DNA from: Ylistrum balloti
Taxonomy: Eukaryota
DNA length: 64,000 bases
Assembly: GCF_031769215.1 (NCBI RefSeq)
Contig: NW_026783003.1
Span: 62,001 to 126,000 of the forward strand
Direction of reading: 5' to 3'
Positions 600-59,064 of this stretch are shown here, in pieces. The notes beneath the pieces were generated by a model, which saw nothing but the letters and a program-made list of their open reading frames with translations, was not told the origin of the DNA and did no database searches. Position 1 is the stretch's first letter. Each line of letters begins with the position of its first letter. The position numbers and the translations under genes are program-made.

Positions 600-889
600 T
601 CAGACAGGAAGCTGCACACTGCCTAGCTTGACCGTTGACCTGCCACCAACAGAGACCGCCCGAACCACCACATATATACGAAGGCCAGAAAGGTTTGTGA
701 TGACTGGTGGAATGTTTAATGTCATAGATGTGGCTCTGGTCTCCATCCATTGGGCAATGTCACCACTACCAAAGTTGCTGCCAGCAGAGACTTCATAGAA
801 AAGCTCATGTGTTGATGTAAACACTGTGTCCCATCCTATTGTCAATTCCTGATTGGAAGAGTCCCAGCTCACATCCAGTGGGGTATCAG
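600..889 (-). CDS. Exon 53 (terminal)
   Basis: gacag|CT DTPLDVSW...VVVRAVSVGGRSTVKLGSVQLPV*; no hydrophobic anchor. Confidence 0.9.
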
Positions 890-33800: not shown

Positions 33801-36800
33801 AAGGTGTAGCATTAGATCATATATAAATGAAAAGTGAAAGGGCACAACAACATATCATAGAGATGTAGTATGCCAAGTTTGAGAAATATTGCTTCAGTAC
33901 TTTAATAGGCATAACTCTACCAAAATGTTGTCAAAATTTAATAGCATAAGGATGTAGTATGCCAAGTTCTGAGATACTGCTTCAGTACTTTTTTTAGATA
34001 CATATGACACAATCTACAATATTAAAATGTTAAATCAATATTTTGGGTATCCTATACATACCATTCACATGGTCTATTGCTGCTGTGGTCCTGTTACCAA
34101 ATCTGTCATCATAATTATTGTCAACATCTGTATAGGGCCTGATAGCGTTCAGCCATTGGTTGTCTTTGTGTCGCTGGTTGATGAAAAGGTCCGTCCACAT
34201 GACATCCACAGTATTTGTATCCCTGACTACCCAAGCATAGCTAGTGTTGGAGGAGGCTGTGGTAACACGTGCATATTTGTCTGCCAGTTTCTCCACCTCA
34301 GACATGTTGTCAAATAGCATCACCTTCCTGGCACTCTGGAGGTTTCCTGCTCTGTCAATCACATGCAGCAGCAACATGTACATGCCTGGTGTTGTCAAGG
34401 CGAAAGTTGCCTGGAAAGAAAATTGAAAAGGACAATATGAAATTCTGTAAAAAAACTTTATAAACTGAATTGTTTTCAAACAGCTATCCAATGTGTGAGA
34501 ACAACTAAATTGTAAGTAAATAGGTAAGACTGATCCTCAAAGATCTGTCACAAAACTGTTCTTACTCTCAGTAAATCTATTTAAAGGAACACAATTTGAT
34601 AACTATAAATTGCTGATGTGGTGATATAGCTTGATTTCTTTACTAATTTGTCAATGAGACTCCAACATATGAAAATTTCCATTTTTTCAGTTTTCGATTT
34701 TGGAAAGGAATACTCAAATCATTTTCATTAATCTATACAGGCATCATACCGAGCTTTGGCTGGTTGGCATTACAACAGGCATGTTGGGAAGGAGCGCATC
34801 TTCTATTATAAGCCCTTGAGAAATCCTTGTGGTGAAGACTTCATACTCATATTTGTCTAGACCTGACAAATCATCTGCCCAACCATCCCAGCTGAAGGTG
34901 ATCGACGGCTGTAACAATATTAAACCATTATATCAGGTGAACATAAAACCATGATTTCTTTTAAGGTGGTATACACTCCGAAAATCAGTATGCACACTAA
35001 GTAAAGCAAACCTGTTTACAAAGTCTCCATCAATGATTGTTTAAGATTATGAAATAGTCTTCCAAGGTATCCACAGGATACACAGTAACTCATTACACTT
35101 ACATCAATAATGAAAAAGTAAGTGGAGACTCATTTAATTGCCGAGGTAGGACCTGGTGACTCATTTAATTAATGAGGTATGGCATGGTGACATTTTATTA
35201 CCGAGATAGGGCATGGTAACACATTTATTTGATGACACTGGGAGTGGTGATTCATCATCAATGCAGAAAGTTGTGACTCATGTCACTTACACTGATGCTG
35301 ACACAGGAAATATTGACTCATTTCACTTTCCTTCAATGTGAGAAAGGAATTGATGAATCATTTTATTTGCATGCTGGAAAGTTTTAACACAAGTAGGGAC
35401 AGGTGACAAAATTCACATACATCAATGATGAGTTGGGAAGTGGTGGCTCATTTCATTGGTGAAGTAGGGACAGGTGACAAAATTCACATACATCAATGAT
35501 GAGTTGGGAGGTGGTGACACATTTCATTGGTGAAGTAGGGACAGGTGACAAAATTCACGTACATCAATGATGAGTTGGGAAGTGGTGGCTCATTTCATTG
35601 GTGAAGTAGGGAGAGGTGACAAAATTCACATACTTCAATGATGAGTTGGGAAGTGGTGACTCATTTCATTTCATTGGGGAGGTAGGGAGAGGTGACAAAA
35701 TTCACATACATCAATGGTGAGACAGGAGGTGGTAACTCATTTCATTGGTGAAGTAGGGAGAGGTGACAAAATTCACTTACATCAATGGAGAGGTAGGAGT
35801 GAACGAATCAGTGAGTTGCTCCAAATTATTCATGATACTGAATGTTTGTGAGGTGTGATAAAATAACCCATTACACTTACATCCTCTGTAAGATCTGGTG
35901 CACTGACAGCCTGACCACAAGAAGTGCCCCCACTCCGGGCACAGGCATGATATGGCAGCTCCATGTCAAAATGGTACATAAACTGCCGAGAGTGGGTCTT
36001 TCCTTTCAACTTAAACAAGGTTTGGGCATACGAGTTTTCACGATGTAAAATTCTCACATACCCTCCATTTCTGACGGACATATCAAAGTAAAGCCTGTGA
36101 AAACAGAGTTATCTTTATAGATTGTTGTTGACTTAACTCAACAAGTACATAAAATAATATTCAAGTATCCAATGCTTTTAAAATCAATTTTCAATAATTG
36201 CCAATATTATGTTAACTAGCCATGCTGAGAGGTGATAATTGAGGTTTGTCTTGGAAAAATATTTACAGTAAAATGTTCTTGAGGGATGAATTTTGTTGAT
36301 TTCATGGGTACTTTTAATCAACGAATTACTATGCCAATGAACTTTTGAAATTAGCAGAAGTAGATTTATTTCGTTATATCTGTCCATAAAATCAAGAATC
36401 CACAAAATAGTATTGTTTGAAAAAAACCACAAAAAATGAGTCGAACAAAAGTTAATGATTCTATAGTACTAGACAAACTTTGTTAAACAGATATATCTCT
36501 TTTTTTCCCATCTGGAAGAATTTGGAGGCTATACAATATTTAGTCAGGTAATGGAACTAAACAAAATATCTTAAATAACAGATTTGTGGTGAATAGATAA
36601 AAATTAAAATTCAAAATTGAATTTTAATTATATTAAACAACCCTGAGCTGCTTGTTAACTCAAATAGGTAGACATATTTACCTATCATTATGCATGAAGT
36701 TACTCCAAGCGTGAAACGTTATATCTTGGGAACATGTGTATGTATCTGTTGATGGATTCATATCTGAACCCTGACAATTCCTCAAGTAATACGGCCAAAC

Positions 36801-39800
36801 GGCGGTCGATCCTACAATAAAGTGATCACAGAAATAACTATTTCTTTGCTTGAAGCTGATAAATATAATCATCACATAATCTACCTATCATCAAGTGAAA
36901 ATAAGTCGTGAATTGAAAATGGGATTTGTTTTCTTTTCATACAAGATTTTACAAAAAACTGTCCTCGTCAAGACTGGTCCTATAAAATCTCAAGAAATGA
37001 AAACTGATTTAAGCTCCAACAAGGACACAGTCATTAAGATCCCCTGCACATGTTCATTTGTAAAATATAGACATTTAAAGTGAGTAACATGGAAAACTGG
37101 AAAAGATATCAGCCAATCAGGTTATAGCAGCCTCATTAAATATGCACAGAATTTGCCAATAACTAAATTAGAACAAAGGGTTAAGGTAACAAGTCTACCA
37201 AACAAGTCTCATCATGATTCATTTGTTCCTTCAAAAGATAATGTGCGGAAAGCGTTCAGTTAGAGTGCCAAAAGATATTGGCCAATCAGGTCACAGCAGT
37301 CTCATTAAACATGCTTAGAATTTGCCAATAATCGAACCTGAACAAGGAATTAAGGTAATAAGTCTACTGAGCAAGTTTCCTATAAATCCTACAAGTCCTT
37401 CAAAAGATGTCATGCAGAAAACAGCATCCAAGAGTGATTAAAGTAATCAGCTAATCAGGTCACACCAACCTCATTAAATAAGTGCAGAATTTGATGTTAA
37501 TCAAATGTGGACAAGGGATTTAAGTTACAAGTGTACCAAACAAGTTTTGTCAAAATCTGGCCTGTCCTTCAAAAGATTTCATGTGGAAAGCAGCATCTGC
37601 ACAGCCAGAACCTATCTGAATATCTCCTGTCAACTTTGTTGGGATAATAAATCTGTAACAGCAGTAGCAATTTATGCTACAGTGTGTCACAATTGCTGTG
37701 TACAAAATGTTTCACTAAACTGGAAAATTGCTGATTACAGTGTTGCCAACTCCGAATCATCCCTAACACTTCAAAATCAAGGGTGGAAGGGCATTTCAAA
37801 GGGTCATCAAGGAAAGAAACCTTATAATAAAGTCTTTTATACAAGTTATCAAATTCTCATTGTATTTAGACACTGTTATGTCATTAACATTTGGTATTTT
37901 CTAAAAACCAATAAAAAGTGAAAAATATCAGGTGTTTTACAACGTTTTTCCTGATATGGCCATGCAATAGCAGTTTGACAAGATGAAATCAAATGAGTTG
38001 ACAACACTGTAGTTTATCCATGTAAGCAGTGATGAAACTAACTTTAAGAACCATCAGAAACATGATCTATTTCTGGTTCATGCAATAAACTCCTGTACCT
38101 TACTATTGCCAGAACTTACAATTTATAAAATATGAAGTCTGTTATATAAAAAAAAAGTTAAATGGCTTTGGATTGATCTTGTGTTGAGACTCAACTTACC
38201 TCTATACAAGGAGAATTTGATATCACCACCAATAATACCATACTGAAAGTCTGTGACATAATGGGTGGACCCATCACTAGACGGGGATGGAGGAAGGTCA
38301 GCTACTGGGACATCCACCTTGAACACACCGGTGAAGTGGGCACTGACACGATTTATCAGCCTGTTATTGGTCCAGACAGTGGGCATAGGGTCGGCATAGG
38401 CAGCATTTTGATCTGCAGGGTTCTCCACTGTCCTACCGTTCAGGTCATGCAGAACTGCTTGCTGGTCAGTAATGGCGGGAGCATCAATGACTGATAAACA
38501 CAAACAGGAATCAATGTTATCTATATACACAATGTGCAACATACCAAGATGACACACCATGTTGACCTTTTTGAGGAATATTCACATCAGACATTTACAA
38601 ATATTATCTGGTAACGGCTGTTCCAGTAAAACATCTATCTCACCCAAAGTCTGTTTTCTTTGAGGTACTACCCATAGAATTTAATTAATAACTTTGTTAG
38701 AAGTAAGAGACAGGACACTGCACCATGAGAAGTGATTTAACAATCCTGTGGTCAAGTAAATGTTTTACTGGAATAGGCATAAGCCTATATGTTCATTTTT
38801 TATATCAATAGGTACATACAGTGACCATGGCCAGATGTGACAGCTGTAGCTTAGGATAGAAACTGCTTCCAACATCCTATTATATACTTGATTCTTAATT
38901 AGTATGTAGTAGAACAAAACTATAGGCTACTGTAGTCAGATTTACACAGGTAATGTATAACAAATATTCTGTCATTGTTTAATGTTATGTTCAGTAACAT
39001 TCCTATAAAGGCACACAATCTTCCAATCAAATTTGGTGGGAATATGCAAACTTACTCTCATCACAATGGTGACCTGTAAATCCCTGCATGCATACACAAC
39101 TATCGGATGTCTCTGATGAACACTTGCCAGGGTAACAGCGTGTACTGTCTGACCGCCATGAACATGCCTCTGTCAACATGAAAAATTTGTGGTAATTAAA
39201 GAAACACAGAAATATCAAAAATGAGTTTAAACACACCTTTTCACTATGCTCAATTGAAATAAATTTCGTTCGCTTTTAACAATGTTGAACAAGTCAACTT
39301 TTTTCAATTCTGAAACTTGCAAATAAGCACCCTGCCTACCATATTCTACCCACTACATGAAAGTATCAAAAATCATTAAAATACTCAGAAATTTGAGGGT
39401 TGGAGGTATGGGGTGTTACCGTTACATTACAGGTAGCAGTAAAATTGCTCTGGTAAAGTTGTAATTACCAGGGATAATAATTACACTGTAGTAATCTTCT
39501 GCTGGTGGGGAATCAGATTATAACTGGCTCAAAAACCCTAGGTTATGTATAAAGATGAGTACTATGCTGACCAGGATGTTGTGTCCAGAGCCCATAAATG
39601 GGGGAGGGGCACATATAGGAACATGGGCTCTTAACAGATCAAATATGGTAATAATGTATTGAAAAGAGAGTGGCATATGTATGGTCTTAAGAGTTACAAG
39701 AATTGACAGGCTTTAGGCAATTGTGGAAAGTTTAACATCACACCACTTAACCACACAACTCATCCAACACCTTCCCAATGTCACATGTATACAATTTTTA

Positions 39801-42800
39801 AGACGAGAATATTACTATGTGTACAATTCTTAATTCCTTAAGCTGGTAAAGCAAGAAATTCAATTATTTTGAAAAGCTGAAAATAATGATATTGTTGAAA
39901 ACAAATGTTACACACGTTTGCAGCTCTTTTTTCCATCAGTAGCAGAGGTGTACGCCCGCCAGTACTGCTCCTCTCTAATCTCCCCATCACAGTAGGCACA
40001 AATGTTGTCCCAGGGAGACGTACACTTTCTATGCAGGCAGTGGTCAATCTTTGGACAAACTGAAAACAGAATATCATACAATTATTTCTATTGTTGCACA
40101 CAATGCTTACCTGTTGTACCCATTGATATTGTTTTGTTATTGTTCACATATACCTGTTGTAAGCATGGTTTACTTGTCGTTTTCCGTGACCTGCTTTTCT
40201 CATTGTTTACCTGTCATTGTTGTTTTTCATTTACCTTTTATGAATATTGCTTAACTGTTGTACCCATTGACATTGTTTTGCTATTGTTCTCATATACCTG
40301 TTGTAAGCATTGTTTACTTGTCGTTTTTTACGTGACCTGCTTTTCTCATTGTTTACCTGTCATTGTTGTTTTTCATTTACCTTTTATGAATATTGCTTAA
40401 CTGTTGTACCCATTGACATTGTTTTGCTATTGTTCTCATATACCTGTTGTAAGCATTGTTTACTTGTCGTTTTCCGTGACCTGCTTTTCTCATTGTTTAC
40501 CTGTCATTGTTGTTTTTCATTTACCTTTTATGAATATTGCTTACCTGTTGTACCCATTGACATTGTTTTGCTATTGTTCTCATATACCAGTTGTAAGCAT
40601 TGTTTACTTGTCGTTTTCCGTGACCTGCTTTTCTCATTGTTTACCTGTCATTGTTGTTTTTCATTTACCTTTTATGAATATTGCTTAACTGTTGTACCCA
40701 TTGACATTGTTTTGCTATTGTTCTCATATACCTGTTGTAAGCATTGTTTACTTGTCGTTTTCCGTGACCTGCTTTTCTCATTGTTTACCTGTCATTGTTG
40801 TTTTTCATTTACCTTTTATGAATATTGCTTACCTGTTGTACCCATTGACATTGTTTTGCTATTGTTCTCATATACCAGTTGTAAGCATTGTTTAGTTGTC
40901 GTTTTCCGTGACCTGCTTTTCTCATTGTTTACCTGTCATTGTTGTTTTTCATTTACCTTTTATGAATATTGCTTAACTGTTGTACCCATTGACATTGTTT
41001 TGCTATTGTTCTCATATACCTGTTGTAAGCATTGTTTACTTGTCGTTTTCCGTGACCTGCTTTTCTCGTTGATTACCTGTCATTGTTGTTTTTCATTTAC
41101 CTTTTATGAATATTGCTTACCTGTTGTACCCATTGACATTGTTTTGCTATTGTTCTCATATACCAGTTGTAAGCATTGTTTACTTGTCGTTTTCCGTGAC
41201 CTGCTTTTCTCATTGTTTACCTGTCATTGTTGTTTTTCATTTACCTTTTATGAATATTGCTTAACTGTTGTACCCATTGACATTGTTTTGCTATTGTTCT
41301 CATATACCTGTTGTAAGCATTGTTTACTTGTCGTTTTCCGTGACCTGCTTTTCTCATTGTTTACCTGTCATTGTTGTTTTTCATTTACCTTTTATGAATA
41401 TTGCTTAACTGTTGTACCCATTGACATTGTTTTGCTATTGTTCTCATATACCTGTTGTAAGCATTGTTTACTTGTCGTTTTCCGTTACCTGCTTTTCTCA
41501 TTGTTTACCTGTCATTGTTGTTTTTCATTTACCTTTTATGAATATTGCTTAACTGTTGTACCCATTGACATTGTTTTGCTATTGTTCTCATATACCTGTT
41601 GTAAGCATGGTTTACTTGTCGTTTTCCGTGACCTGCTTTTCTCATTGTTTACCTGTCATTGTTGTTTTTCATTTACCTTTTATGAATATTGCTTAACTGT
41701 TGTACCCATTGACATTGTTTTGCTATTGTTCTCATATACCTGTTGTAAGCATTGTTTACTTGTCGTTTTCCGTGACCTGTTTTTCTCATTGTTTACCTGT
41801 TGGACTCATTATTTACTTGTATCCAATGTTTGCTGTTTAATTTGGTTGTTTTCCCCTGTTGACAAGACTATACTCACTATCACACATGCCACCGTTGGCG
41901 TAGAATCCATCATTACAGCTGGAACACTGGTCAGGAGCAGTACAAGTACCTCCACTATGTCTCTGTCTCACGCCAGATCGGTACTGTATGTAGTCATTCC
42001 TATAATACTGTGTACATGCACCTCCATCACCCGGATTTATCCGCTTGTTACAAATGGCTGTGGAAAAAAAAGTTTGGTTTGTGGGAATATTCAAACACTC
42101 AAAAGGCCCTGCTTTTAAAAACAATTAAAGAGGTAAAGAAAGATCTCTGAAACAATTTAAGGAAAATTCCAAGATGGCATTAGCTGCACTTCCTGGAAAA
42201 AATTGAACTTCCACCTAATGAATAGTGTAAAAATGAAAAGCAGATAAATAGCATCTTTCTACACAAATTTAGATAAAAAAACTGCCTCATACAGCTGTTT
42301 TGTCCTTCTAAGAAATCTAGGAGGCGAATGTGAGCAAGATAAAAAGTGATCAAAGAAATGTCAAAAGAGGTACACTAACCCCAAAATTCAATCAATTTCA
42401 ATAACGCAAAATCTAAAAAAATATATATTGATAAGTACATGTGTATATATCTTCTTATAAAATGAATCCTGTTTTTATATCAACATTCAAACAATATGCT
42501 ACCATCGTGTTCAATCCATGAAATAATTTCTAAGTCTTTAAAGGAAGGACAAATGCCAACATAAAAGGTAAGTTTGCATGACTTCCATTTCAGGAATTTA
42601 ATCCAACAACTGTGGAAAGCAACAAACACAGGGCTATGATCAAACTTTTCATATTTTTCCTAAATATTCTTTCCTTTTAATGATATGTCCTTACCATGGT
42701 TGCAGTTTGTGAAATCGTCATACCAGTTCTGGTATCCGTTACAGCAGAAGTAATTGTAAATTGTCTTATCTCTGTGAACAAAGAAGCAAATTATTATCAG

Positions 42801-45800
42801 ATTGTTCAACACATTCTGTAAAAACATTAATTTTTGATGCAAGATTTTTTGTTGTTGATTTAATGGGTACTCTTAATCCACAAATTGTTAAATTAGTATA
42901 CCATGTAAGCAGATTAATTGTCCACAGACGGCCATCTTGGATTTTGATATAATAGTTTGTTTTGCTAATTAATAAAATAATTATGTAGGCAAAAAACAAG
43001 TGTCAATGAATGAATGATTTTTTGAAAACCCATAAAAATTGAGACCCACAATAATTTGTAATTCTACAGTAGTTTATCCGAGTGGTATCCTCTAGTCATC
43101 TAATATATGGTAATAGATAATAGTTCATCAAAACCAAAGGCAAAGAAGTGCATTACATGCATTGTCAAGGAAAAAGATCTGATAATCAATTATATTGTAT
43201 AATTATCACATTTGTTTATATTAAGATGATGCTATGTTTGAACAATATTTTGATTACATGTAAAAACTTATTTTAAATTTTTAGACACTGATAAAAAGTA
43301 TAAAAATGTCTGATGATTTTAGTATTTTCAAGATGTAGGCAGGTCACGACATGGCTGATATCAAGTCAACAAATGAAATCAGGCGAGTTGGCAACACTGT
43401 AACTTACAATCATTGTGAAAATGTCACTCCATTAGAATGTAGTTCAAATGAAAAGATCATTATTTGTTATAAAAATAGCTTTCAATTACTTCTATAATTA
43501 AAACTAATTTAGGATTTTTTAACTTTTTATTTTTCAAAATTTAGAAAGTTGGCTTATACATTTAAGAAATAACTTCAATTGGGAATGGACACCATTACAT
43601 GTCCCAAAAAGCCCTTAAATTTTACTAGAAATTGTATGAAACACAAGAAATCATCTAAAATGCATAATTTCGTTGTAGATAAGTGGAGGATAACATATTT
43701 GTTAGTTGGACAAATATCTAACAGATGGGTGCAATACCATTTAAAGAACTGAAAACAGTATAAAGAAGAAGACTTTGCTCATTTTTGGCTTCAACTGGTC
43801 ATCAATTCACATGTATTGGAGAGAATTGGTATCTATAACGAGTAAAGGTTGGTGATGTCTTCATCTCTAAATATAAATTCAGTACCTAATGGGGACAGGG
43901 TCTCCAGGGGCCTGTCTCTTTTAATTCTAAGGTTATCCTTGTTTCTGAAACACTTTCAGTTTTATTTGCATGAGTGTAACTATATTTGGTAAACAGTTTG
44001 TCTATTAATACTTACGTATATCTGGTACACCGACCCCACTTCCAGAAGCTACATTTTGAATAATACTTCGTTTCCTCAGTGTGAGTGCTCACACAAACAT
44101 GGTTTCTGAAACATTCAAACATTAGATTTAATTTAAAAGAAATGTTTCTTTGATAATAATTCAACATATCTGCATAAGCAGCAGTGACAACTGGCTTTCA
44201 CATGATATCTCCTACCAGGGATACATGGAGTTATCTACTCTTTATAAAAAATGTACATCCCTGAAACATGGATGTGTATCCATCTCGTCTCTCGTGGACA
44301 CAGTCCTTCAATTCTGAAACGAGATGGAGACCAGTGGCGTAGCAAAACATTTTTAAGAGTGTATGCTTTCAAGAGAGGATCCAAGGGCGAAGCCCCGGTT
44401 AAGGGGGTATAGGGGCGCAGTAAGGTTAAAAAAGTAGGGCAAATATATCTCAATGGAATTCGAGTGTATGTTTAAGCATATAAGCATACATTATTGCTAC
44501 GCCTCTGGAGACAAATCGTTTTCTAGTATCACAACGCCATTGACAAAAGCATTTGGACAACATACTTTCTCCTCGACTGTGGATACAAACCATTTCCCGC
44601 CAAAACTTTCAAGGGACGTCACTCTTTCTTAAATAAATGATGCTTCTATATATTAGAGTGAGAGACACAGATAAATGACATATAAGCGTAAAATGTTATA
44701 TATAAAAACAGCTCTTTTCCTGTGTAACTAGAGTTTATGTTATTTTCATAATATGTCATTTAAAATACATAACATTAACATATTATGATACAAACTATAT
44801 CCGACGGGAAATATATATAAAAAATCTAATATAGCGTAAATATATCTAAACCTGCCGAACGTAATATCTGCACCCTACAGGAAAGTCTTCTTGTTTTGAC
44901 GGACAGCATGACTAGAATTAAGTAATTTAACTCAATTTCAAGGATATGTACATAAACAAGCTATCAATTTTATTCCAATATATTATTTCAATCCATGCGT
45001 CTATATTTTTTCTCGATGCAAAGGATGAGACACCCAACCAATGGATTATGACAGACATTAAATGATAAATACATGCAGTGTGATGTAATCAATCATATTT
45101 TACTATCTATACATGCGAAAAAAATTGTTTTGATCAAGTCCTCCTTTACACAGCCAAGGAAACAGCCACGGACTTCGTCATACACGAGGTGGTCCCCTAA
45201 CGATATGTCTGCTACCTGTTGAAAATCGGCCAAGAAATAACAGTGTTTGTACGGACACTAGTACTGGTACCGCGTGCTAATTCAGACAATGCATTTCCTA
45301 ATTATAGATCTGTTTCTTATTTTGCTGAACAGTTCTTTGTTTTATGAACAGACATGTACCTCAAAGCTTGAATCAGATGTGTTTCTTTGTTACATCGTAA
45401 TAACTTGACGTGGATTGAATTAAACATAATTGCAAAATTTCGATTTTATTTCTTTTAATAAGACGAATCAGTGGAAATTGTATAAATTGATAAGTCCAGA
45501 TAATACGTATCTGTAATAAGGCTTATTGAGAAACAATATACAGACATGCACATAGCGTACACGCTCGTAAACAATGTGTTCTACATAACATCATTCTCAT
45601 ACGGATCTATCCTAACAACCGAGTTTTATGTCCCGGTTTCACAAGTGGGCCAAAACTAGAAGGTTTCACCATTGATCGCTTTAAAAATTGTATATGTCAC
45701 TGTTACTATAAATAGAATATGTATGACCCAGTCACGTCCTTTCTCTGAGACTAACTTCATTTTCGTTGTATTATCGTTATAAAACTCCATGCACATGCTT

Positions 45801-47616
45801 ACAGCCATGAATTCTTGTAAATGTTTGCGTCAAACTTCTGTGATAAATAACAATGTTAACATTACCTCTGGTTTGAAAAGAAAGAAAGAACGAGAAAGAA
45901 AGAAATACGAAAGATCTAAAGGCATTTTCATAATATTGATTGGTTATATAACAAGGATCTTATTTAGAATCTGGGAACAGGAATATGTTCCTGTAAAGAT
46001 CAAGAGGCACTAGATTTTCGCCAATAGTGTAGGATGAGGGCGATTGAGCTTGAGTAGATCTGCCATTTTCAGAATTCAGTATTGAATTATTCTGCAAAAC
46101 ACGAGACAATGACGTCATCTCAAAGAGGAAATGGTCTATACACTTATTGAAAAATCTCTGTGGAATAAAAACCAGGACAGTGTCGTGCCGCTTGATCTTA
46201 CTTAAGATCCCATATATACGTGTATATGATCCCATCAAATGGCTTTGTCACGTTCTACGTGAACCCATACGTTACTGATTAAAGGTTTAACTTGTAAGGT
46301 ATGTGATGGGAGTCGAGATAAATCCCATATTTGCTCCAAACACACGACGGCATTTAACTATTTCACCAGTGTAGATACATATACCGGGTCGGCTTGTTCT
46401 GGGGGTTTTACATGACACCCACCAATGTTAGGTTAAACCTCCAATTCAGCCCTCTTTAACATTATTTAAAAACAACAAACAAACACGTGGTTAACACAAG
46501 CCCGGGGCTATTCAACAGGAATATTTTATCATGTAATCTTGAAAATTCCAAATAATGAATGAGAGAAAAAAAAAAACAAAGAAAAACAAACCTTTATACA
46601 TGTATGACATATTTTGATGACCTTCCTAAAACATTGAATCATGCACATGCGTTATATTAGCACTTCGAATTCACGTAAAATCCTCATTATGGTTTACTTA
46701 TTTTTACTTATATTACTCTCAAACGTGAAAAAGAATCCATTATAGTCTTCAGCAGTCTTCTATATGTACATGTAGGGAAGGGTTTTACAATGCCAGAATG
46801 TGGTCTGCTCAGTTAGGTTCTATTACATAGTGACAATTCGCGGACACGGGGATCCTGACCAGACGAGAATATAACTGTTATATAAGAAGGGGAATTGGGG
46901 TTAGAGGGACTCGAAGGTGGAGGAGGCAGCGGTGGTAAAGGGTGGGATCAGATGTGGATTTGGAAGAGGGGTTATGATGGTAAGGGGTAAGGTGGTAGGG
47001 GGGTTTGTGAGAGAGAGAGAGAAATATATGATAATGGTACGGGATGGGTTGAATGGGGGTTGAGGGAGAAAGGGGCGGTGGTGGTAAGGGATAATAAGGG
47101 AAGAGGGTTTAAATGAGGAAGAGGCGGTGATGGTAAAGTGTATGGGGAGACAGGGATTTGGATTAGGGGAAGTGATGATAGTAAGTAGATTCGTGGGACT
47201 GAGGTTTGAGGGAGGAAGAGGCGGTGATGGTAAAGGGCGTGGTGGGATGATGGTTTGAGGATGTGGGAAGTAATGGGCAGAGATAACGTGGAATCTGGAG
47301 GTGAGGGATTTGAAGGAGGAGGCAGTGATGGTAAGAGCTAGCGAACGTCTACTCCAATTTAGACCGACTGGATATATATATATACGAAAACAATATATGA
47401 TACCTAAGATGTCTGTTCTGGACATATGATGGTATTTACTATATAGATATAGGTTTCATTGGAGTAGGAAATGGAGGAACAGCATACTCACCCAGGTCCA
47501 TCAAGTGGGTCATTATAGACCATTGGGAAGCCACCACTGGTCCCTAAGTCATGGAATGGTCCGGCCTGAGTCAGACCAAAGGACAAAACACACGTTAATG
47601 ACCAAAGCGTCAACAT
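600..47616 (-). CDS. Complete 53-exon gene encoding a ~3441-aa secreted EMI/EGF + FN3-like-repeat + galactose-binding-like protein (uncharacterised)
   Basis: Manually spliced exons, all GT-AG, phases matching at every junction; total 10326 nt (divisible by 3) from ATG 47616 to TGA 600-602; the same beta-sandwich motif recurs across exons. Product naming is inferred from motifs, no database search. Confidence 0.88.
1005..1125. repeat. ~24-bp minisatellite (gcacgacaccaaacactaccattg), about 5 copies
   Basis: Direct inspection; produces the 8-aa repeats in ORFs 974-1159 and 1032-1250. Confidence 0.85.
1940..2940. repeat. 73-bp tandem array, 14 copies, overlapping the exon 52 donor
   Basis: ggttaccattaatggtgggaggctgtgtgaacactgtaag...; units start at 1948...2165, 2238...2820, 2893. 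Confidence 0.95.
2899..3088 (-). CDS. Exon 52
   Basis: FTLDGEKRK...VFTQPPTIN G|gtaacc; phase 0-1; its 3' end is the first unit of the 73-bp array. Confidence 0.87.
3626..3960 (-). CDS. Exon 51
   Basis: YQPFGNELQTF...SSDGV...KWSGFVD...EGFT; phase 1-0. Confidence 0.9.
4354..4449 (-). CDS. Exon 50
   Basis: LDLDSWEQ...WEVNDPESGLDFCEWAI; phase 1-1. Confidence 0.88.
5019..5033 (-). CDS. Exon 49 (15-nt microexon, candidate)
   Basis: tttatttttcag|GCACAGGAACAACAG|gtaagtac; strong splice sites, phase 1-1, frame-neutral so it cannot be proven from frame alone. Confidence 0.65.
5320..5532 (-). CDS. Exon 48
   Basis: YKKGGTQVQDF...DLTAPVITAVNDGS; phase 1-1. Confidence 0.9.
5765..6544 (-). CDS. Exon 47 (780 nt; contains the galactose-binding-like/DUF642-like domain)
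   Basis: MRVYNKVYAVD...DTTPP...NLATNPSFE...LSQDISGL...IDDIQV...EYLWAI; phase 1-1. Confidence 0.92.
6868..7071 (-). CDS. Exon 46
   Basis: IHDLEYQSST...ATWHGFVDLDAGVKTYYWCVGS; phase 1-1. Confidence 0.9.
7540..8030. mobile_element. Degenerate satellite-like / Helentron-associated (HINE-like) repeat
   Basis: Recurring aaatttgagga...atttc...ga.atag...ataac subunits; boundaries approximate; family assignment from recall. Confidence 0.4.
8690..9160. mobile_element. Degenerate ~150-bp subrepeat element (HINE/satellite-like)
   Basis: gtaaca.tg.ccttgac-like motifs at about 8731, 8883 and 9028. Confidence 0.5.
9406..9609 (-). CDS. Exon 45
   Basis: DDVYIV...SSDGFVIDNVVPVMGKVYDGT; phase 1-1. Confidence 0.9.
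9775..9919 (-). CDS. Exon 44
   Basis: VTESNH...DMDFLEYQPFMVSW...STMPG; phase 0-1. Confidence 0.88.
10407..10549 (-). CDS. Exon 43
   Basis: KPILSEGISYAFFIRVWY...SSGVTIMTTPP; phase 1-0. Confidence 0.87.
10973..11094 (-). CDS. Exon 42
   Basis: FEWSVCFE...WHDAG...LVPR; phase 2-1, donor gttcgt. Confidence 0.8.
11661..11781 (-). CDS. Exon 41
   Basis: NPNSPLDVKDFD...LQPL TG|gtaagt; phase 1-2. Confidence 0.85.
12175..12349 (-). CDS. Exon 40 (Cys-rich)
   Basis: VGLSSS...RCDSYSCLGHCVCAPQDNVCPYSHLDPC; phase 0-1. Confidence 0.88.
12710..12985. repeat. 54-bp minisatellite, about 5 copies
   Basis: aatgttacttatatagaattgaggatggaagccctgctggaggtctatcagtgt; starts directly after the exon 39 donor. Confidence 0.92.
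12990..13133 (-). CDS. Exon 39
   Basis: VTGIPVS...HMWAVNT |gtatgt; phase 0-0. Confidence 0.85.
13553..13731 (-). CDS. Exon 38
   Basis: MFSIKTNH...SWIGFADLHS...SDLNK; phase 1-0 (an in-frame alternative donor lies 12 nt further on). Confidence 0.85.
14126..14279 (-). CDS. Exon 37
   Basis: VNGIVRDY...ACNGAGIC...DSSPPSR; phase 0-1. Confidence 0.9.
14480..14845. repeat. Degenerate ~60-bp tandem copies of the exon 36 3' end plus donor
   Basis: The copy at 14537-14590 matches exonic 14788-14841 at 46/54 nt with no indels. Confidence 0.8.
14788..15017 (-). CDS. Exon 36
   Basis: LYVDTVSNGFTVDNTAPV...QLSSTK; phase 1-0. Confidence 0.88.
15070..16835. repeat. 38-bp minisatellite, about 46 copies, filling intron 35
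   Basis: ggactggcctacagacagtctgtgatgtatatgtattt; local 152-bp (4-unit) higher-order repeat. Confidence 0.95.
16856..17064 (-). CDS. Exon 35
   Basis: TYIGAKWYGFSDPQSG...VRAYNKA; phase 2-1. Confidence 0.9.
17472..17658 (-). CDS. Exon 34
   Basis: FVLSMK...TACNTANLC...DNSPPTAGAVQDG; phase 1-2. Confidence 0.9.
17863..18021. mobile_element. Foldback/MITE-like element with nested inverted repeats
   Basis: Outer arms gtaggagtgttttca / tgaaaacactcctac (15 bp perfect); inner arms gtttcaccagtca / tgactggtgaaac (13 bp perfect). Confidence 0.55.
18349..18625 (-). CDS. Exon 33
   Basis: AYNGAGL...DLTPPVIGHVYDG...YWEGFHD; phase 0-1. Confidence 0.92.
19326..19509 (-). CDS. Exon 32
   Basis: WKEVFSDLESGIQRYMWAVGSEPG...YYITIK; phase 2-0. 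Confidence 0.9.
19565..19800. repeat. 30-bp minisatellite (gacatgtcatacaggtagacatgatagagc) with decayed flanking copies
   Basis: Direct inspection; produces the TCHTGRHDRA and MSTCMTCRSI repeats in the ORF track. Confidence 0.85.
19877..20009 (-). CDS. Exon 31
   Basis: KDFAGRSTTQMSHAVIIDVTPPIK...; phase 1-2. Confidence 0.87.
20644..20760 (-). CDS. Exon 30
   Basis: TTAGGNDMVDFTDVG...GHTYYATVT; phase 1-1. Confidence 0.9.
20985..21090 (-). CDS. Exon 29
   Basis: TILTDIYVNWETFVDVEE...YNVSI G|gt; phase 0-1. Confidence 0.85.
21448..21665 (-). CDS. Exon 28
   Basis: ttttag|AT KEYMNTEF...CSDGVVVDLTPPIPGNVWIG...YQ; phase 1-0. Confidence 0.87.
22286..22540 (-). CDS. Exon 27
   Basis: GALKNGYG...SIKCGNT; phase 1-1. 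Confidence 0.87.
23047..23239 (-). CDS. Exon 26
   Basis: LTFELSLTGEMD...QQYDE |gtaagt; phase 0-1. Confidence 0.88.
23588..23752 (-). CDS. Exon 25
   Basis: LVVQMDRFYDPD...YEWAIT...VTASK; phase 0-0. Confidence 0.88.
24418..24653 (-). CDS. Exon 24
   Basis: caacag|GT IWTVVRDF...YRVALKLCAG...GGVEK; phase 1-0. Confidence 0.85.
24921..25065 (-). CDS. Exon 23
   Basis: DNRVRCDEERDFQ...HWAIEEEDAAG; phase 0-1. Confidence 0.85.
25245..25279 (-). CDS. Exon 22 (35 nt)
   Basis: cttacag|TG DDGTLFHHHEQ |gtaagt; needed to bridge phase 1 to phase 0. Confidence 0.78.
25598..25733 (-). CDS. Exon 21
   Basis: TYYFTVEAVTSVGSVSVTSDGVTV...KPCNFT; phase 0-1. Confidence 0.87.
26033..26230 (-). CDS. Exon 20
   Basis: DIEDSDFQTDQSRLQVRW...IAIGTTSGG...HWQ; phase 0-0. 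Confidence 0.9.
27130..27386 (-). CDS. Exon 19
   Basis: HSEYGVDVQQY...YYVTVRAENSVGL...DVPVG; phase 1-0. Confidence 0.9.
27657..27810 (-). CDS. Exon 18
   Basis: TLGPFLLDTTAPTFSG...FYSFAI G|gtgaga; phase 0-1. Confidence 0.9.
28105..28477 (-). CDS. Exon 17
   Basis: AKATVVSDLDLFP...TETENIQ; phase 2-0. Confidence 0.88.
28744..29021 (-). CDS. Exon 16
   Basis: VIETTD...YFVTVVAFNHALEPSVPVCSDGVTID; phase 0-2. Confidence 0.9.
29263..29472 (-). CDS. Exon 15
   Basis: ITIDVSPPHTGVVHDG...HWEGFFDRESG; phase 0-0. Confidence 0.9.
30002..30220 (-). CDS. Exon 14
   Basis: DLSACQATYGGNPGDCYCTPYQGC...YIEIQVTNIAQLVTTLRKK; phase 0-0. Confidence 0.88.
30742..30865 (-). CDS. Exon 13
   Basis: IEWESYDFHSGIDSLYWKLYD...SQRAD; phase 2-0. 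Confidence 0.87.
31953..32410 (+). mobile_element. Non-autonomous Helentron-associated (HINE/pearl-like) element
   Basis: AACAAGAG start, two ~157-bp internal subrepeats (32072/32229), (GGAC)n microsatellite at 32341-32363, GC-rich end before an A-run; matches the layout described for bivalve pearl/HINE elements. Confidence 0.6.
32595..32898 (-). CDS. Exon 12
   Basis: VVDFWVSFEV...DNTAPVIRDLWL...; phase 1-2. Confidence 0.9.
33150..33500 (-). mobile_element. Probable interspersed repeat remnant
   Basis: ttattagg...tttcttattattcttcttct start and aatatggccaccatgacgtc / aatatctcgaaaacc motifs resembling bivalve dispersed repeats; from recall only. Confidence 0.35.
34062..34410 (-). CDS. Exon 11
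   Basis: ATFALTTPGMYMLLLHVIDRAGN...IDHVN; phase 0-1. Confidence 0.9.
34750..34908 (-). CDS. Exon 10
   Basis: PSITFSWDGWADDLSGLDKYEYEV...SQSS; phase 0-0. Confidence 0.87.
35393..35800. repeat. 71-bp minisatellite, 6 copies
   Basis: gtagggacaggtgacaaaattcacatac... at 35393, 35464, 35535, 35606, ~35682, ~35753. Confidence 0.9.
35881..36094 (-). CDS. Exon 9
   Basis: LYFDMSVRNGGYV...APDLTED |gtaagt; phase 2-0. Confidence 0.87.
36682..36811 (-). CDS. Exon 8
   Basis: STAVWPYYLRNC...SNFMHND; phase 1-2. Confidence 0.85.
37100..37620. repeat. Diverged ~170-bp satellite-like subrepeats, about 3 copies
   Basis: (a/g)gc.aatcagg...cctcattaaa at about 37110, 37282 and 37449. Confidence 0.7.
38200..38490 (-). 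CDS. Exon 7
   Basis: IDAPAITDQQ...IKFSLYR |gtaagt; phase 1-1. Confidence 0.88.
39056..39169 (-). CDS. Exon 6 (EGF-like)
   Basis: ACSWRSDSTRCYPGKCSSETSDSCVCMQGFTGHHCDE |gtaagt. Confidence 0.9.
39916..40059 (-). CDS. Exon 5 (Cys-rich)
   Basis: tttcag| CPKIDHCLHRKCTSPWDNICAYCDGEIREEQYWRAYTSATDGKKSCK |gtgtgt. Confidence 0.88.
40103..41800. repeat. 144-bp tandem array, 12 copies, filling intron 4
   Basis: gtacccattga anchors at 40116, 40260, 40406 ... 41702; 288-bp dimer higher-order repeat in the middle. Confidence 0.95.
41878..42057 (-). CDS. Exon 4 (EGF-like)
   Basis: ICNKRINPGDGGAC...GGTCTAPDQCSSCNDGFYANGGMCD |gtgagt. Confidence 0.9.
42695..42771 (-). CDS. Exon 3 (EMI-like, second half)
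   Basis: cacag| DKTIYNYFCCNGYQNWYDDFTNCNH |gtaagg. Confidence 0.88.
44016..44105 (-). CDS. Exon 2 (EMI-like, first half)
   Basis: tttcag|A NHVCVSTHTEETKYYSKCSFWKWGRCTRY AC|gtaagt. Confidence 0.85.
44332..44507. mobile_element. 176-bp MITE with 14-bp TIRs and a 5-bp flanking duplication
   Basis: CAGTGGCGTAGCAA ... TTGCTACGCCTCTG (1 mismatch); GAGAC on both sides. Confidence 0.8.
46890..47340. repeat. Purine/G-rich degenerate repeat in intron 1
   Basis: Recurring gagga.gaggc.gtgatggtaa motif with strong G/A skew on the + strand. Confidence 0.75.
47492..47616 (-). CDS. Exon 1 (signal peptide)
   Basis: MLTLWSLTCVLSFGLTQA-GPFHDLGTSGGFPMVYNDPLDGP, then GG|gtgagt; in-frame TGA upstream of the ATG; phase 2 fits exon 2. 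Confidence 0.85.
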
Positions 47617-47660
47617 GACCCAAGGAAAGTGGCCGTCGAGTCATCGATATCACATAATTA

Positions 47661-47685
47661 TGACGTCACACTCACACTGACGTCA
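47661..47685. promoter_or_regulatory. Tandem CRE (TGACGTCA x2) just upstream of exon 1
   Basis: Perfect palindromes at 47661-47668 and 47678-47685, 45 and 62 bp from the ATG; TATAAAT on the minus strand at 47819-47825. Confidence 0.55.
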
Positions 47686-50600
47686 GAAAAATAATCTTGT
47701 ACTGTAACAGTTTCCTTGGTTCTGTAATTCCCTTCGAAATTTTACACACAAACGATTTCTTCGTCACGAAATCGTTTTCTTCGGCGTTTTTGTTACACCA
47801 TTACACCATTGCTGGTATATTTATAAAATGAAGAATGTCTTGTTACATTTTCTCCATGTAAATAAAGATATAAGACAGAAATGTTAATCTCCGGAACAGA
47901 TTTCACCAACCTAGACCTGTCTTAGTAGTGCTAGCCGCCATTACTAGGTAGCTGTCATTGTTCGTGTTGTTCGTCTCTATTGTTTCGGAGTTCGATGATT
48001 AGTGAGATAAGGGTCGTCATATACAATATCATAAGGTTTTATTCGTGTGTGACTTAGATGGTATCCAACAGTCCAATACGCCATTCAATACATTCAAAGG
48101 CAGACTTAGTATGAAACATAGGAATAGAGAGAGAGAAAAAAACAAGTCATAATATTATGACAGGGGTCTGTCATCGGCTAATGTTAAATAGGTGTTGTAA
48201 TGAGTTGTTGCATACATTTTTACGTTATTTCAATAAGTTTTGTATACTCGAATAATTAGTTAACTCAAATACCTCCAGTAACCCGTGTGTTGTGTGGGTA
48301 TGTATCATTGCTAAATCAGGATGACAGACAGCCAATTTAGATGTGACGCGAAATGATAAATGTACAGTTGGGTTCACTGCGATATATTATATAACAAATG
48401 TCCAGACACGAGCATGGCAAAACATTGAGTATTAAGGAAAGAATAAGAAAATTTAGATCTATCGCAATGACTGATAGTTTACTTTTTCTTATAAGGATAT
48501 GACCCGGTCAAAACGGCCGCCCACAATTCTCTATTAAGCTTCACACGTCCAAATTTTCATCACCGGTAAAAGTTTAAGCCTTTTATGTTGTCTCTTATTT
48601 TGTGGATAAACGGCTATTATCAATCATAACTCTTAATACATATATATATAAACATATCTGTCATTGTTCACTATCATATTTACAACGAATTAACAACAAT
48701 TTACAAGTTGTCTCCCTTAGTATACGATGTGCAGTGTGCATTGTAAGGGATATATATATATACATGATATATGATTAGTACGGAAAATGACGAAGAGGAG
48801 GAGATGGCAGGACAGGACAGGTACAATATTTTGTTCACAGAATCAATAAAGAAGATTAAACTGTACGACAGCTTGCAATCCACTCCGTCTCTGACTTTAA
48901 ACAGCTAAAACGTTACATCTTCAGTGAACGTTTTCGGCGACGTTCTCATAAGATTACACTACATATTTAAAATTTGACTGTCATCGGAAAACACCATTTG
49001 GATAGAATATAAATTTGGGCTAAGAAAGCGGGTTCGAATCTTTCACGGCTGCATGTTTATTTGTCAACACACAAATCATTATCATTGTATCACTGAGACC
49101 GGTATAGAGGATCGTAACGATCCTGTACTGGTAATAAACTTAACTAACCTAAACTAAAGCTCCAAATATAATTTCTTGTTGGTTTACCTGTTCTGGGTGT
49201 TACAATCGACAGGAAACTATGGGTCCTTCGAATTAATAAATGTCTTAAAAATATAGTGTCTCACACTGACCGGGACGTCGATAGGACAGTTTGGCTAAGA
49301 CTCTCAGAAGTAGACTGGTCCTTCTATTTATGCAATCGGATAGAAAATCTTATCACACAGATTATAAGGTACTGTTCATCTGGGTCTGAGGCTTGTTTTT
49401 GGAGTCTTTAAAACCATACATCTAATTCAAGTCTCCACGTAGATACTAACGAACCGTCGCTGTATAATGGTCGATATGAAATGTCGCTACATTCCACACT
49501 ACACGGCTTGTTGTTACCTTGTGTTTTATCTAAATTATAAAACTCAATTTCAAAATAAAATAAGTGCATTCCATGTTGTTCCGAGTTTCAGACAATGTTC
49601 AAATTTATGTCCATACATATTTTGGAACATTTCTTCAGGTTGGCAATGTCAATAGAATAAAAATTCTTATGACACAACCATCAGAAGATTAAAGTGTGAC
49701 GTTTCGATAACTACACTGCACTGGCGTACGTAGTGTACGAGATGGTAAGGCATCGACCAACTTTTTCGGCTGCACTTTAATTTTATGAGCACTGAAGTCG
49801 ATAATAGTGTGACGAGATGGTAAACAGAGTATAGACCAAAAAACTACACCAGATGGTAACAATGTACTATAGTCAATTCGGCTACGCTTTATTTAATACT
49901 TGGTCAAAGATGGGCGACACAATAGAATAAATACCATTCCTCAATTATGTTTTTAATCTACCATAAAGTTGACTGATTGTTGTATGCAATGAAATTTTTA
50001 AAAAAAAATTAAGTCAAAATATAATGACCCCCCCTCCACCACCCCTTCAGTGATAGTTGAACCACGGGTCAATATGCAGAAAACCAATTATAATCACCGG
50101 CTATCGGTGACTGATCTCCTTGCTGTAGAGACAGGTATCGACAAGACATTGTCGTTGTCCGTCTTCGGATGAGTCAAATGTACTCTACCCATTTACATAG
50201 ACAGAAGAGCGAAGACCAGACTCTGTGTAGAGCCAGCAATACAGAGTGTCTACATTAACATACATTTAATTTAACTGTACATTGGATTATAGCATACATA
50301 ATTTGTCGCTTCTTCTTTCTATTTTTTTTTTTTCAATACTACATTTTATCGTTCGTTTTAAACTAATTATTCTTCTACCTCTTTTTAGTCCGCCATTTAT
50401 TGGCTCTGATGACCTTTACTGTGTTGGTGGGTTGTAAGGGTATGATTATAATAATAGAACTGCCCCGCCGATAGACACATATAATTTACGATCGTTTATG
50501 GAATTCATCAATGTCCACAATCTACCTTTTGGTTTAATGAACCGTGTTTGTAACTGGTCAGTCAGCCTTTCAGGTGACATACTTTTATGGTAGAACAAAC

Positions 50601-52764: not shown

Positions 52765-52897
52765 GTTAAGTGGCGCAGTGGTAACACTCTCGTCTCTCGC
52801 CTAGACGTCCGTAGTTCGATTCCCCTTCCGGACGTGAAAAAGATATGGTAAGGGGATCACCTGCCCAACCACGTGTATTCCGATTGCTTCCCACAAT
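52765..52897 (+). mobile_element. tRNA-derived SINE, 5' part
   Basis: A box TGGCGCAGTGG at 52771, B box GTTCGATTCC at 52814, then tattccgattgcttcccaca resembling the V-SINE-type central motif TACTCCGGTTTCCTCCCACA. Confidence 0.65.
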
Positions 52898-55710: not shown

Positions 55711-57921
55711 TACTCTTAGAAGTTACTATATGTCAGTAAGAACACGGATTTTAGATTAATTTTAAGTTCGTGATAAGAGATACGGCACATGTAATATCAA
55801 AAATCATAATTTTAAAAATACGTTCAGTTTTCCCTTCATCGGAGTAAGAACCTTTGCCACTTTTAAATCAAATATATGACCGTAGAGTTAAGAATTCGTG
55901 CTAAGTCTGTGTCCCGAAAGGGCCCTTCACCGCCGCAATCTAACCGTGTTCTCGGATAACAACAAGGTAAGGTATTACGAAATAACCTGTCCCAGCTGAA
56001 AAACTACAAGAAGACAACATATCTTTATTTCTTATTTATATTCATGATATCAAGAATGTTATATCGTTTTGAAAATGAATAGCATACAAGATCACTTGAA
56101 AAAGTAAAAAGGGTTGATTAGTTGCGTTTAAATTGTTGTTACGCACGCCGACGGTCTTGTTTGAGATATTTATGGATTTTCCCAGGTCGTTTGAATGGGT
56201 GTGGCGGACACAGTACAGAGGATAATACTAATATCAGGATGTCCGGTTCTACCTCAACTCCAACTCGGTCAGAAGGGGAAAAACTGCGAACAGTCTTACA
56301 AATTCTATTAGGCAAAATCAAGTAGTGAAACATAAGCTGGTCTTAATGGAACTGTGCATATTGTTGGAAAATGGTAAAAATTGTATTGTTTTGTATGTAC
56401 AGATAATACTAAACTTATAAGATAATAAATTGAATGGATTTAAAATTACATCCGATATTTATTAACATCGTAAACATAGTTAAGCATAATTATCCTGCCA
56501 AATCCGACCACGTGATCTCAATATCTAAAATTTACTGTTGTCAATTCAATCCAATCTATTTTCCTTTGTCGTGTTTAAGGTATAGAGAAAGATGTTTACA
56601 AAGCAATATGTCATTGTTCAGCAGTTGTGTGATAAAACATGAAAACCTGTTTCGTTTACTATCCCAGTACTATTGTTACACGTCTAAATCTCCGTCGGGC
56701 TGGTCACACAACTTCAGGGAATTAAAACACGTTTGACTTTTGTCTAACTGTATGGCTTAATGTATCTGACGATTCAAATAAACTTCCAGTATAGACAAGT
56801 GTGATACTAACGATAAAAAATAGCATTTTCTACTCTTACTTGGATCATAAATAAAGTTACGATATTTTTTTCAGTTGGGGGTTTACTGGCGAGTCCTTCG
56901 AAACAACTGACCATATGCACTCATAAATGAAATATTATATTTTATTCAACAGATATTGTTGAACTGAATTGTAACACTCTGAGTTTTATAATAATCACTG
57001 AACGTGGTTATTATTTGTTTGTGATTTTGAACATGGATATTAATGCTATCACGGATTCAAATTCGAAGCAAGTCCGACATGTTATGATGTGTAACCTCTA
57101 TGACTGGCCCCTTTCTACCTGTGGGCTCGCGTGCCTACAACTCGATAACCGCTAAGGGGACGTTACCCATGGTATCCCGTAGAAATAGCTTCATATGTTT
57201 TCGTTGTTTTGTTTCTGCTTTGTTAATTCAATAGAACTGTTAACCCTACTTAGTTATCACAACTTTTATGTTTAAATATCTTCCTTTAGATTCTATTTGT
57301 TGTGTTGTTTCCAGGTTATATTATTTAATTAGTTACGTTGATGTCCAATTGAATACTTTTGGTCCTTTACGTAACGATAGACCTGTCTTATTGTGATAGT
57401 GCACCCAGTCACGAACAAAAAACAGGTAAACGTCGTAGCTGTCATTCTGTTCACTGTATTATCTGTATTGTCTAAGTATTTCGATAAATATTTTTGTACA
57501 TTCTTAACGTGCTTCAATTCATACAAAAATCCCCTAAAACTCCTATAATTTTTTTTACTTGTTTCTTATTTTATCGTATGTAAATCCCTTCCATTCCTTA
57601 CGTTAGAACGTTCATTTAATGATTGATACAAGAATGAAACATTAACAACATGTCAGGTGAAAAGTTAAATTTTATGTATGGTTAAATATGGTAACCTACA
57701 AGCCTACCTAGCCTCTCCTACTTAAACCACTGACGCTGTGATGAGAGGGATGATCAAATGAGTCATGTTAAGATAGAAGAGGTTTTATAAAATAGCACCA
57801 GATTCGTAATTGGATATTGAAAAAACGAATCAGCTGGGTTAAACAAGCATTTTCTTTTTAATTCTAATGATATATCTATGATAGGTTTGGGATTTATGTA
57901 AATGATATTTTTGTGACTTAC

Positions 57922-58037
57922 CCTGGACCGTGAATAAAGAACGAATATGGATAAGGGAAATCAATCGCTTCGCTCCTTCTAATGAGAATGAACACCGACC
58001 ACGTGATAGTCCAGATGATCAGGGTCACTTTTCCCAT
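57922..58037 (-). CDS. Candidate alternative first exon (second signal peptide) of the same gene
   Basis: MGKVTLIIWTITWSVFILIRRSEA-IDFPYPYSFFIHGP, then GG|gtaagt; phase 2 and GPG junction as in exon 1; too short for the ORF track. Confidence 0.65.
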
Positions 58038-58501
58038 GAGGATCAATATTGTCTCCGTACCAGTTCGCCAGAAAAAAAAGAAAGCTCTCGCAGCTTGTCT
58101 GAGGGTGTTACCACCACGCCACCCCGAGCGTTTTCTTCACCAAAAATATAAACTCTTGAAAGTTTGTTTCTGGATTATTTCAAAACTCTGCAACACAACA
58201 CGAATTTACCTCCAATAGAACGTATCATCATATAATCCAAATGTCCTGTATACACACAGTATCACACAAAATTTTACATGACAATCACGACTAACGAATC
58301 AAAAATGAAAGTGATAACATTAAAGATTCCTGGTACTAATCCATATCATTTGTGTAAAAATCTATCCACTGTATCCTCTGTAATTAGTTGCTTCGAAATC
58401 ACTGTCCACCGCCCATCTCCCAACAGTACAGTTAAATCGCCTGTTGATATTACATGTCCGTTTCAACAGCATTTCCTTATTTATGGTCGTTCGTCAACAA
58501 G

Positions 58502-58739
58502 CCAATCGGGGAATCACCACAGACCGTGACGACAACTCAAGCAGACCCCCTAGGCGTGCACAGATCAATAGACTATGCCAATCAAAACACCTGTAGTAGC
58601 ATGCTTTTAAGACCCTGCCCCAGATCCGTGACGGGGTCAAATGTAACCGGTTCGTTTTTATACAACCACTAAAATTCGTTTATTGCTTACTCAGATGATA
58701 ACAAAGCATTACACAATATTGTTTGCACACTGACGTCAG
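58502..58739. promoter_or_regulatory. Putative distal promoter: two CCAAT boxes plus a CRE
   Basis: GCCAATC with CCAAT at 58502 and 58578; TGACGTCA at 58731-58738; upstream of the candidate alternative exon. Confidence 0.4.
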
Positions 58740-59064
58740 TAAATAGCAGAAATTTTGGAGATACGACACACACGGAGTTTTTACATGGAGACACCAGTTG
58801 TTTATTAGATATGTCATAATTTTCTATCAATTATTAATATGTATCCTTTTAGTTTTGATAACAAGATGCTATTAAATGTATTGACACAATACGCGACTTG
58901 GAAATAAATGACATTGAAAGGCTTTAACTGTACAATAGGATACCTTTAAATTATAAATAATGTAAAAATCTAACCATTAACTATGTTAACGTAACTAGAT
59001 AAAGAAGATCACTTCCACCAGTATTACAGAAGTGCTTTAATCCGCTGGATAATTTGTTCATGAG

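Follow-up and report, generated by a model that had tools for sequence, protein, structure and literature searches.

The DNA analysed here, called the window, is a 64,000-nt stretch of the genome of Ylistrum balloti that appears to carry, on its minus strand, the 5' part of a gene for a giant secreted, cysteine-rich and repeat-rich protein of scallops (Pectinidae). The locus raises the question of where this gene begins, and whether it has one beginning or two. A sequence-only reading had proposed that, besides the obvious first exon with a signal peptide (exon B below), another exon of the same kind (exon A) is hidden further upstream, and that the two are mutually exclusive first coding exons, each spliced in frame to the same exon 2. 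The proposal was upheld by a gene model of the scallop Pecten maximus in which exon A is joined to exon 2, by the conservation of both exons, and by the structure of exon B, which can only be a first exon.

According to the reading favoured here, to which a probability of about 0.78 is assigned, two alternative promoters would serve a single giant protein, the body of which would stay the same while the leader and the short mature N-terminus come in two versions. The alternative first coding exons would lie 13.8 kb (A) and 3.4 kb (B) upstream of exon 2, each providing a start codon, a signal-peptide-like leader and a short mature tail that differs from that of the other. Both would finish on G-P-G(G), in phase 2, and join the same exon 2 at position 44105. 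Depending on which of the promoters, separated by 10.3 kb, is active, the same body would be preceded by a different leader and different first 15-24 mature residues.

Structure of the two first exons

The features of the locus are listed in Table 1. Direct reading of the sequence confirmed the coordinates, the phase and the description of exon A in the sequence-only reading. Exon A, on the minus strand, consists of 38 codons, starting with the ATG at 58037-58035, plus two nucleotides (116 nt, phase 2, last base 57922). The encoded peptide comprises, in order, M-G-K, an uncharged core of 16 residues, R-R-S-E-A and I-D-F-P-Y-P-Y-S-F-F-I-H-G-P, followed by a split glycine codon. The leader has a basic n-region (K3) and a core with a mean Kyte-Doolittle hydropathy of 2.3, the c-region reads S-E-A in the window and C-D-A in P. 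maximus, and the mature tail of 15 residues terminates in G-P-G. A crude home-made filter recognised the n-region, the h-region and the small residues at -3/-1, and the leader is accordingly described as signal-peptide-like, a predicted Sec-type signal peptide with a long core and a dibasic pair. The only sequencing run covering the stretch is a DNA run (X1) of about 11x from another individual, roughly 1% different; its depth is even, at about 11x, over exon, intron and upstream sequence. A 1,944-nt contig from this run spans 57168-59102 with about 1% divergence, and none of the differences listed falls in exon A.

Table 1. Features of the 5' region of the scallop gene in the window
Feature	Position	Strand	Remarks
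Presumed 5'UTR and core promoter of exon A	58038..58160	minus	inferred from a TATA-like element and composition
Exon A, alternative first coding exon	57922..58037	minus	ATG, signal-peptide-like leader, mature tail; orthologue in P. maximus
Splice donor of exon A, GTAAGT	57916..57921	minus	context CCAGG/GTAAGT, same in P. maximus
Conserved region upstream of exon B (5'UTR and promoter)	47617..48125	minus	~64-66% identity to P. maximus over ~500 nt
Exon B, other first coding exon	47492..47616	minus	ATG, signal peptide, Gly-rich mature tail; orthologue in P. maximus
Exon 2, common acceptor exon	44016..44105	minus	Cys-rich module N-H-V-C...; orthologue at L001:53657-53747
Rest of the giant multi-exon gene	600..44015	minus	many repeated modules; continues past the low end of the window

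The presumed promoter region of exon A holds a TATA-like TATATTTTT at 58150-58142, has a locally higher G+C content and contains no upstream ATG. Alignment of the sequence upstream of exon A with P. maximus gave no convincing conservation.

Exon B extends from the ATG at 47616 to 47492 (125 nt) and likewise ends in phase 2, with a tail terminating in G-P-G and the donor GTGAGT at 47491-47486. In both scallops an in-frame TGA lies eight codons 5' of its ATG with no AG between them, and exon B is therefore usable only as a first exon. As the two genomes read, in-frame splicing of exon A into exon B is impossible, and as starts the two exons exclude each other. The first base of exon 2, at 44105, follows a ...tttcag acceptor, and of the three frames only that entered in phase 2 is open, the other two reaching stops within 10 codons; the phase compatibility with exon 2 was computed for both exon A and exon B.

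Comparison with Pecten maximus

When 1.84 billion representative proteins were searched by phmmer with a non-repetitive exon near the 5' end of the gene (window 38201-38488, minus strand; 96 residues), one close match was obtained, P0001, a protein of 424 aa whose residues 243-338 match the query with 83% identity. P0001 is XP_033751511.1, the "uncharacterized protein LOC117335548" of P. maximus in RefSeq. This natural RefSeq protein served as the spliced reference, and for translation the base completing the split glycine codon was added. Residues 1-40 of P0001 represent the orthologue of exon A (a hydrophobic leader, K-R-C-D-A and I-D-F-P-H-P-Y-S-L-F-I-N-S-P-G), to which the exon-2 orthologue is directly joined from residue 41 onward (N-H-V-C-V-T-T-H-T-E-E-T-K-Y-Y).

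At the corresponding P. maximus locus (LR736847.1:16730603-16823586, here L001), the exon A orthologue is the annotated first coding exon (L001:10001-10119), and exon 2 starts at 53657 after a first intron of 43.5 kb. This intron contains an intact but unannotated orthologue of exon B (L001:43257-43381), which retains the length of 125 nt, the ATG, the phase and the donor (GTGAGTA) and shares 69% amino acid identity with its counterpart in the window. The annotation of P. maximus is thus a mirror image: its model uses A, while B lies unannotated in the first intron. The sequence-only reading had suggested a tBLASTn of both exons in related genomes, and the equivalent comparison with P. maximus found both of them intact and in the same phase. 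Exon A of the window had a single match in L001, at 10028-10120 (E = 8e-9); conversely, the only match of the P. maximus A peptide in the window was at 58040-57921 (E = 3e-9). The distance between the A and B starts is 10.3 kb in the window versus 33 kb in P. maximus, and that from A to exon 2 is 13.8 kb versus 43.5 kb, the P. maximus introns being about three times longer. The two genes are alike in having an A-type first exon spliced to exon 2, as predicted for the window and annotated in P. maximus, and an intact B in the intron; LOC117335548 differs from the window in an exon A that is one codon longer, in a largely different leader sequence and in a model of 424 aa. The P. maximus record, which gives only the longest product per gene, holds no B-type product; on the same model a B-type product would be two residues longer.

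A tblastx comparison of the whole interval with P. maximus identified as conserved only exon 2, exon B with its upstream block, and exon A, and it returned neither a third alternative exon nor an internal exon between exon A and exon 2. This result and a tblastn search of the exons of the gene against positions 47.6-64 kb, which found nothing, accord with the earlier remark that A and B have no further exon between them. A further candidate explanation, that exon A is the start of a tandem duplicate of the gene, was rejected: blastn and tblastn searches with the exons of the gene against 47.6-64 kb found nothing, and a region without DNA or protein likeness to these exons argues against a tandem paralogue.

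Both exons bear the mark of selection on the encoded peptide. In the last 16 full codons of exon A, 8.0 of 10.2 synonymous sites have changed between the two scallops, against 5.0 of 37.8 non-synonymous sites (Fisher p = 1.2e-4); for exon B the values are 21 of 30.5 and 18 of 92.5 (p = 2.4e-6). The proportion of synonymous differences (pS) is 0.69-0.79 in exons A and B and 0.42 in exon 2. With synonymous sites so near saturation, unselected DNA would not be expected to align, and the flanks of exon A indeed gave no alignment with P. maximus, the exon forming an island of conservation. Its length, 116 nt in the window and 119 nt in P. maximus, differs by one codon, so that the frame is kept. 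The leader of exon A has diverged (pN 0.65), yet the hydrophobic core of 16-17 residues, the dibasic pair and the small-x-Ala pattern are retained. Divergence of sequence with retention of hydrophobic character is the usual mode of signal-peptide evolution. Judged by the comparison of the two scallops, exon A is a real, conserved and selected first coding exon, and exon B is conserved to the same degree and likewise under selection as coding sequence. The case illustrates that, at saturation of synonymous sites, comparison alone suffices to validate first exons of about 40 codons.

Conservation also extends into non-coding DNA, as about 500 nt upstream of exon B can be aligned at 64-66% to P. 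maximus despite the saturation of synonymous sites. Within this region, a non-coding block of about 140 nt (window 47967-48107, minus strand; L001:42813-42953), located 350-490 nt 5' of the exon B ATG, has ~64-70% identity between the scallops, with long runs near 80%. The block has stops in all frames and no match in Rfam, and probably represents either a regulatory element (promoter or enhancer) or part of the 5'UTR of the B transcript. Closer to exon B, 45-70 nt 5' of its ATG, two perfect palindromic TGACGTCA (CRE-like) motifs are present at 47685-47678 and 47668-47661 (minus strand); neither is kept in P. maximus.

The sequence-only reading had considered the A and B peptides otherwise unalike, the fruit of an old duplication with both frames kept. 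The lack of similarity holds at the DNA level, where exons A and B have none, but not for the mature tails. In an ungapped comparison from the junction, all four tails of the two species share F-P at -12/-11 and the terminal P-G, with equal spacing to the junction and G-P-G common to both exons; Y at -9 occurs in three of the four, and I or L is found at -5. Shuffling of columns in the A and B tails gave p = 0.002, or 0.046 without the terminal G-P-G. This likeness weakly suggests an old exon duplication or, alternatively, a common constraint imposed by the module that follows.

Use of the two exons and competing explanations

The join of exon A to exon 2 is seen in the RefSeq model of P. maximus only, and from it the corresponding junction of exon A with 44105 would be expected in Y. 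balloti. In principle, the P. maximus join could be an ab initio extension of the gene model. Such an extension would be unusual, because a 119-nt exon 43.5 kb away was chosen over the nearer intact exon B. The join of exon B to exon 2 is predicted from phase, donor and conservation, and it is conservation that argues for the use of this exon. The spacing of the two starts (10.3 kb, and 33 kb in P. maximus) implies that exons A and B may be under separate control. Both predicted leaders would be cleaved. It is, however, conceivable, if rather unlikely, that the A-type protein is an uncleaved type II signal-anchored form or one processed by a convertase, with the B-type protein simply secreted. 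Such a difference would fit the core of exon A, which with its 16-17 residues and mean Kyte-Doolittle value of 2.3 is longer and more hydrophobic than that of exon B (1.6-1.9), and the dibasic pair (R-R or K-R) that follows it in both scallops. If this were so, the choice of promoter would switch a giant matrix protein between cell-tethered and free forms.

That exon A is a chance open frame, in which an ATG, a hydrophobic stretch and a GTAAGT happen to combine in phase 2 and are never expressed, was assessed with the crude filter. The filter, designed after the candidate had been seen, required an ATG, signal-peptide-like n, h and c regions and, ahead of any stop, a GTRAGT donor. Five matches were returned for the 64-kb window with both strands included, and the only two in phase 2 are exons A and B. 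Third-order Markov simulations produced 0.37 phase-2 matches per 128 kb, from which about 0.05 would be expected in the 16 kb upstream of exon B. This rarity is suggestive, not decisive, since the filter is post hoc and many windows were read; with very many windows scanned, a rate of about 0.05 per 16 kb leaves some room for coincidence. Applied to the P. maximus sequence of 53.7 kb that precedes exon 2, the same filter returned exactly the orthologues of A and B. An exon that is orthologous, frame-preserving, under selection and annotated as coding in P. maximus is a very improbable product of chance, and conservation effectively refutes this explanation.

Two further explanations accept exon A as coding and dispute how the exons are used. 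One holds that only one of them is really in use, for instance that A is the working exon and B rare or restricted to some lineage, or the reverse in Y. balloti. The presence of an A-type product only in the P. maximus record agrees with it. An unused exon, however, would not stay so well conserved: both exons have kept the ATG, the frame, the phase and the donor under purifying selection at saturated synonymous divergence, and about 500 nt of DNA upstream of exon B is conserved as well, which makes the use of a single exon unlikely. The other explanation is that exon A heads a separate secreted N-terminal product of about 400 residues, generated by early polyadenylation or read-through into an intron, and that the giant protein is of the B type only. 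Its starting point is the sole annotated A-type product, which has 424 aa and whose C-terminus runs into sequence without homology. This ending is explained by a 1-nt shift at L001 ~82,966, within a conserved exon; homology resumes in the next frame with 82% identity, and the next P. maximus exon past the shift is present at L001:83498-83662 (87%). XP_033751511.1 thus ends at 424 aa because the P. maximus assembly is frameshifted by one nucleotide relative to the window, and the short model is no evidence for a short isoform specific to exon A. The shift may be an indel of the assembly or a real lesion in that individual. The source of the P. maximus assembly, PacBio Sequel reads followed by polishing (PMC7191990), makes a residual indel error plausible. 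The window moreover has no sign of an early terminal exon, and a short A-specific product is regarded as quite improbable.

Gene body, related systems and flanking DNA

The body of the gene consists of many repeated modules with V-D-x-[TS]-[PA]-P motifs. Pfam gave no family above the cut-off for ten exons of the window or for P0001, P0008 and P0013; the result was likewise negative for a distant relative of 1,400 residues. An EMI domain, considered for exons 2-3 on account of the pattern N-x-V-C ... C-C-x-G-[YW], was not confirmed, as the whole 424-aa P0001 is without a Pfam family at E <= 0.01. In an AlphaFold model of P0001, based on an alignment of six sequences, pLDDT is below 50 for residues 1-109, and a Foldseek search with this model gave no significant match, only generic beta-sandwich matches. 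A sequence search of the PDB found nothing. Word searches for other N-termini with P0001 and with its residues 1-155 returned distant mussel and abalone proteins, whose N-termini are not comparable, or nothing. No paper was found in a literature search for the locus or the protein accession.

The observed/expected ratio of CpG changes in a step at ~44 kb, which corresponds to exon 2: from about 0.8-1.0 it falls to the 0.1-0.5 of the gene body, with values of 0.7-1.5 over all of the upstream sequence. The same step occurs in P. maximus just before exon 2, at about L001:52000. The undepleted sequence upstream was considered as evidence against transcription from exon A and was rejected as such, because the intron between B and exon 2, which is necessarily transcribed, is equally undepleted and the boundary is the same in P. 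maximus; the profile is thus uninformative on the transcription of exon A. The step has the appearance of a germline gene-body methylation footprint, with methylation beginning only at the point of convergence of the two alternative transcripts.

In the clustered protocadherins and UGT1A, related first exons stand in tandem, possess individual promoters and signal peptides and are spliced to common downstream exons; they arose by exon duplication. The scallop gene resembles these loci in having tandem first exons with signal peptides that would be spliced to common downstream exons, but it has only two of them, they are tiny (38-41 codons) and encode no domain, and the homology of A and B is weakly supported. 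Alternative first exons that change the N-terminus are also represented by the long and short signal-peptide isoforms of IL-15, by secreted and cytoplasmic gelsolin and by IL-1RN. Transcription units with an alternative exon 1 have been described for human SHBG (PMC2706245, PMC2973947), and alternative first exons have been surveyed in plants (PMC2174465). As in these cases, the scallop gene would have exclusive 5' exons with their own starts, a common second exon and a common body, and a difference in the N-terminus or leader. In the scallop gene, however, both alternatives encode a signal-peptide-like leader, and the predicted choice would lie between two leaders and two short mature tails, not between a secreted and an intracellular form.

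Alternative first exons are well known, and what is new is a case in an uncharacterised scallop gene. The use of two promoters would be biologically ordinary; its value lies in annotation and in pointing to forms of a large extracellular protein that may be specific to a tissue or stage. The gene model is corrected in that the start of the giant gene would lie 10.3 kb upstream of the obvious exon 1, with two conserved, selected N-termini.

Several minor features were noted around exon A and its orthologue. The 8 kb upstream of exon A in P. maximus (L001:1-8000) have a G+C content of 52-57% versus ~36%, and a single-exon TatD-DNase-like ORF at L001 6728-7417 has no counterpart in the window. 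A 6-kb segment of the first intron of P. maximus (L001:20001-26000) is entirely devoid of CpG. A weak match of 91 nt between window 52758-52848 (minus strand) and L001:10324-10409 (67%, E = 6e-4), situated 5 kb downstream of exon A in the window versus ~250 nt in P. maximus, may be either a displaced conserved intronic element or a chance similarity. The Rfam scan of 44-64 kb identified no families. Simple and tandem repeats are found in the region from 47.6 to 64 kb; upstream of exon A (59070-59799 and 60850-61523) they include a 46-nt tandem array of 16 copies and a 31-nt array of 22 copies. The intron between A and B contains two dispersed repeats (56836-57336 and 55500-55666), whose word depth in the DNA run is 400-590x versus ~11x for unique sequence.
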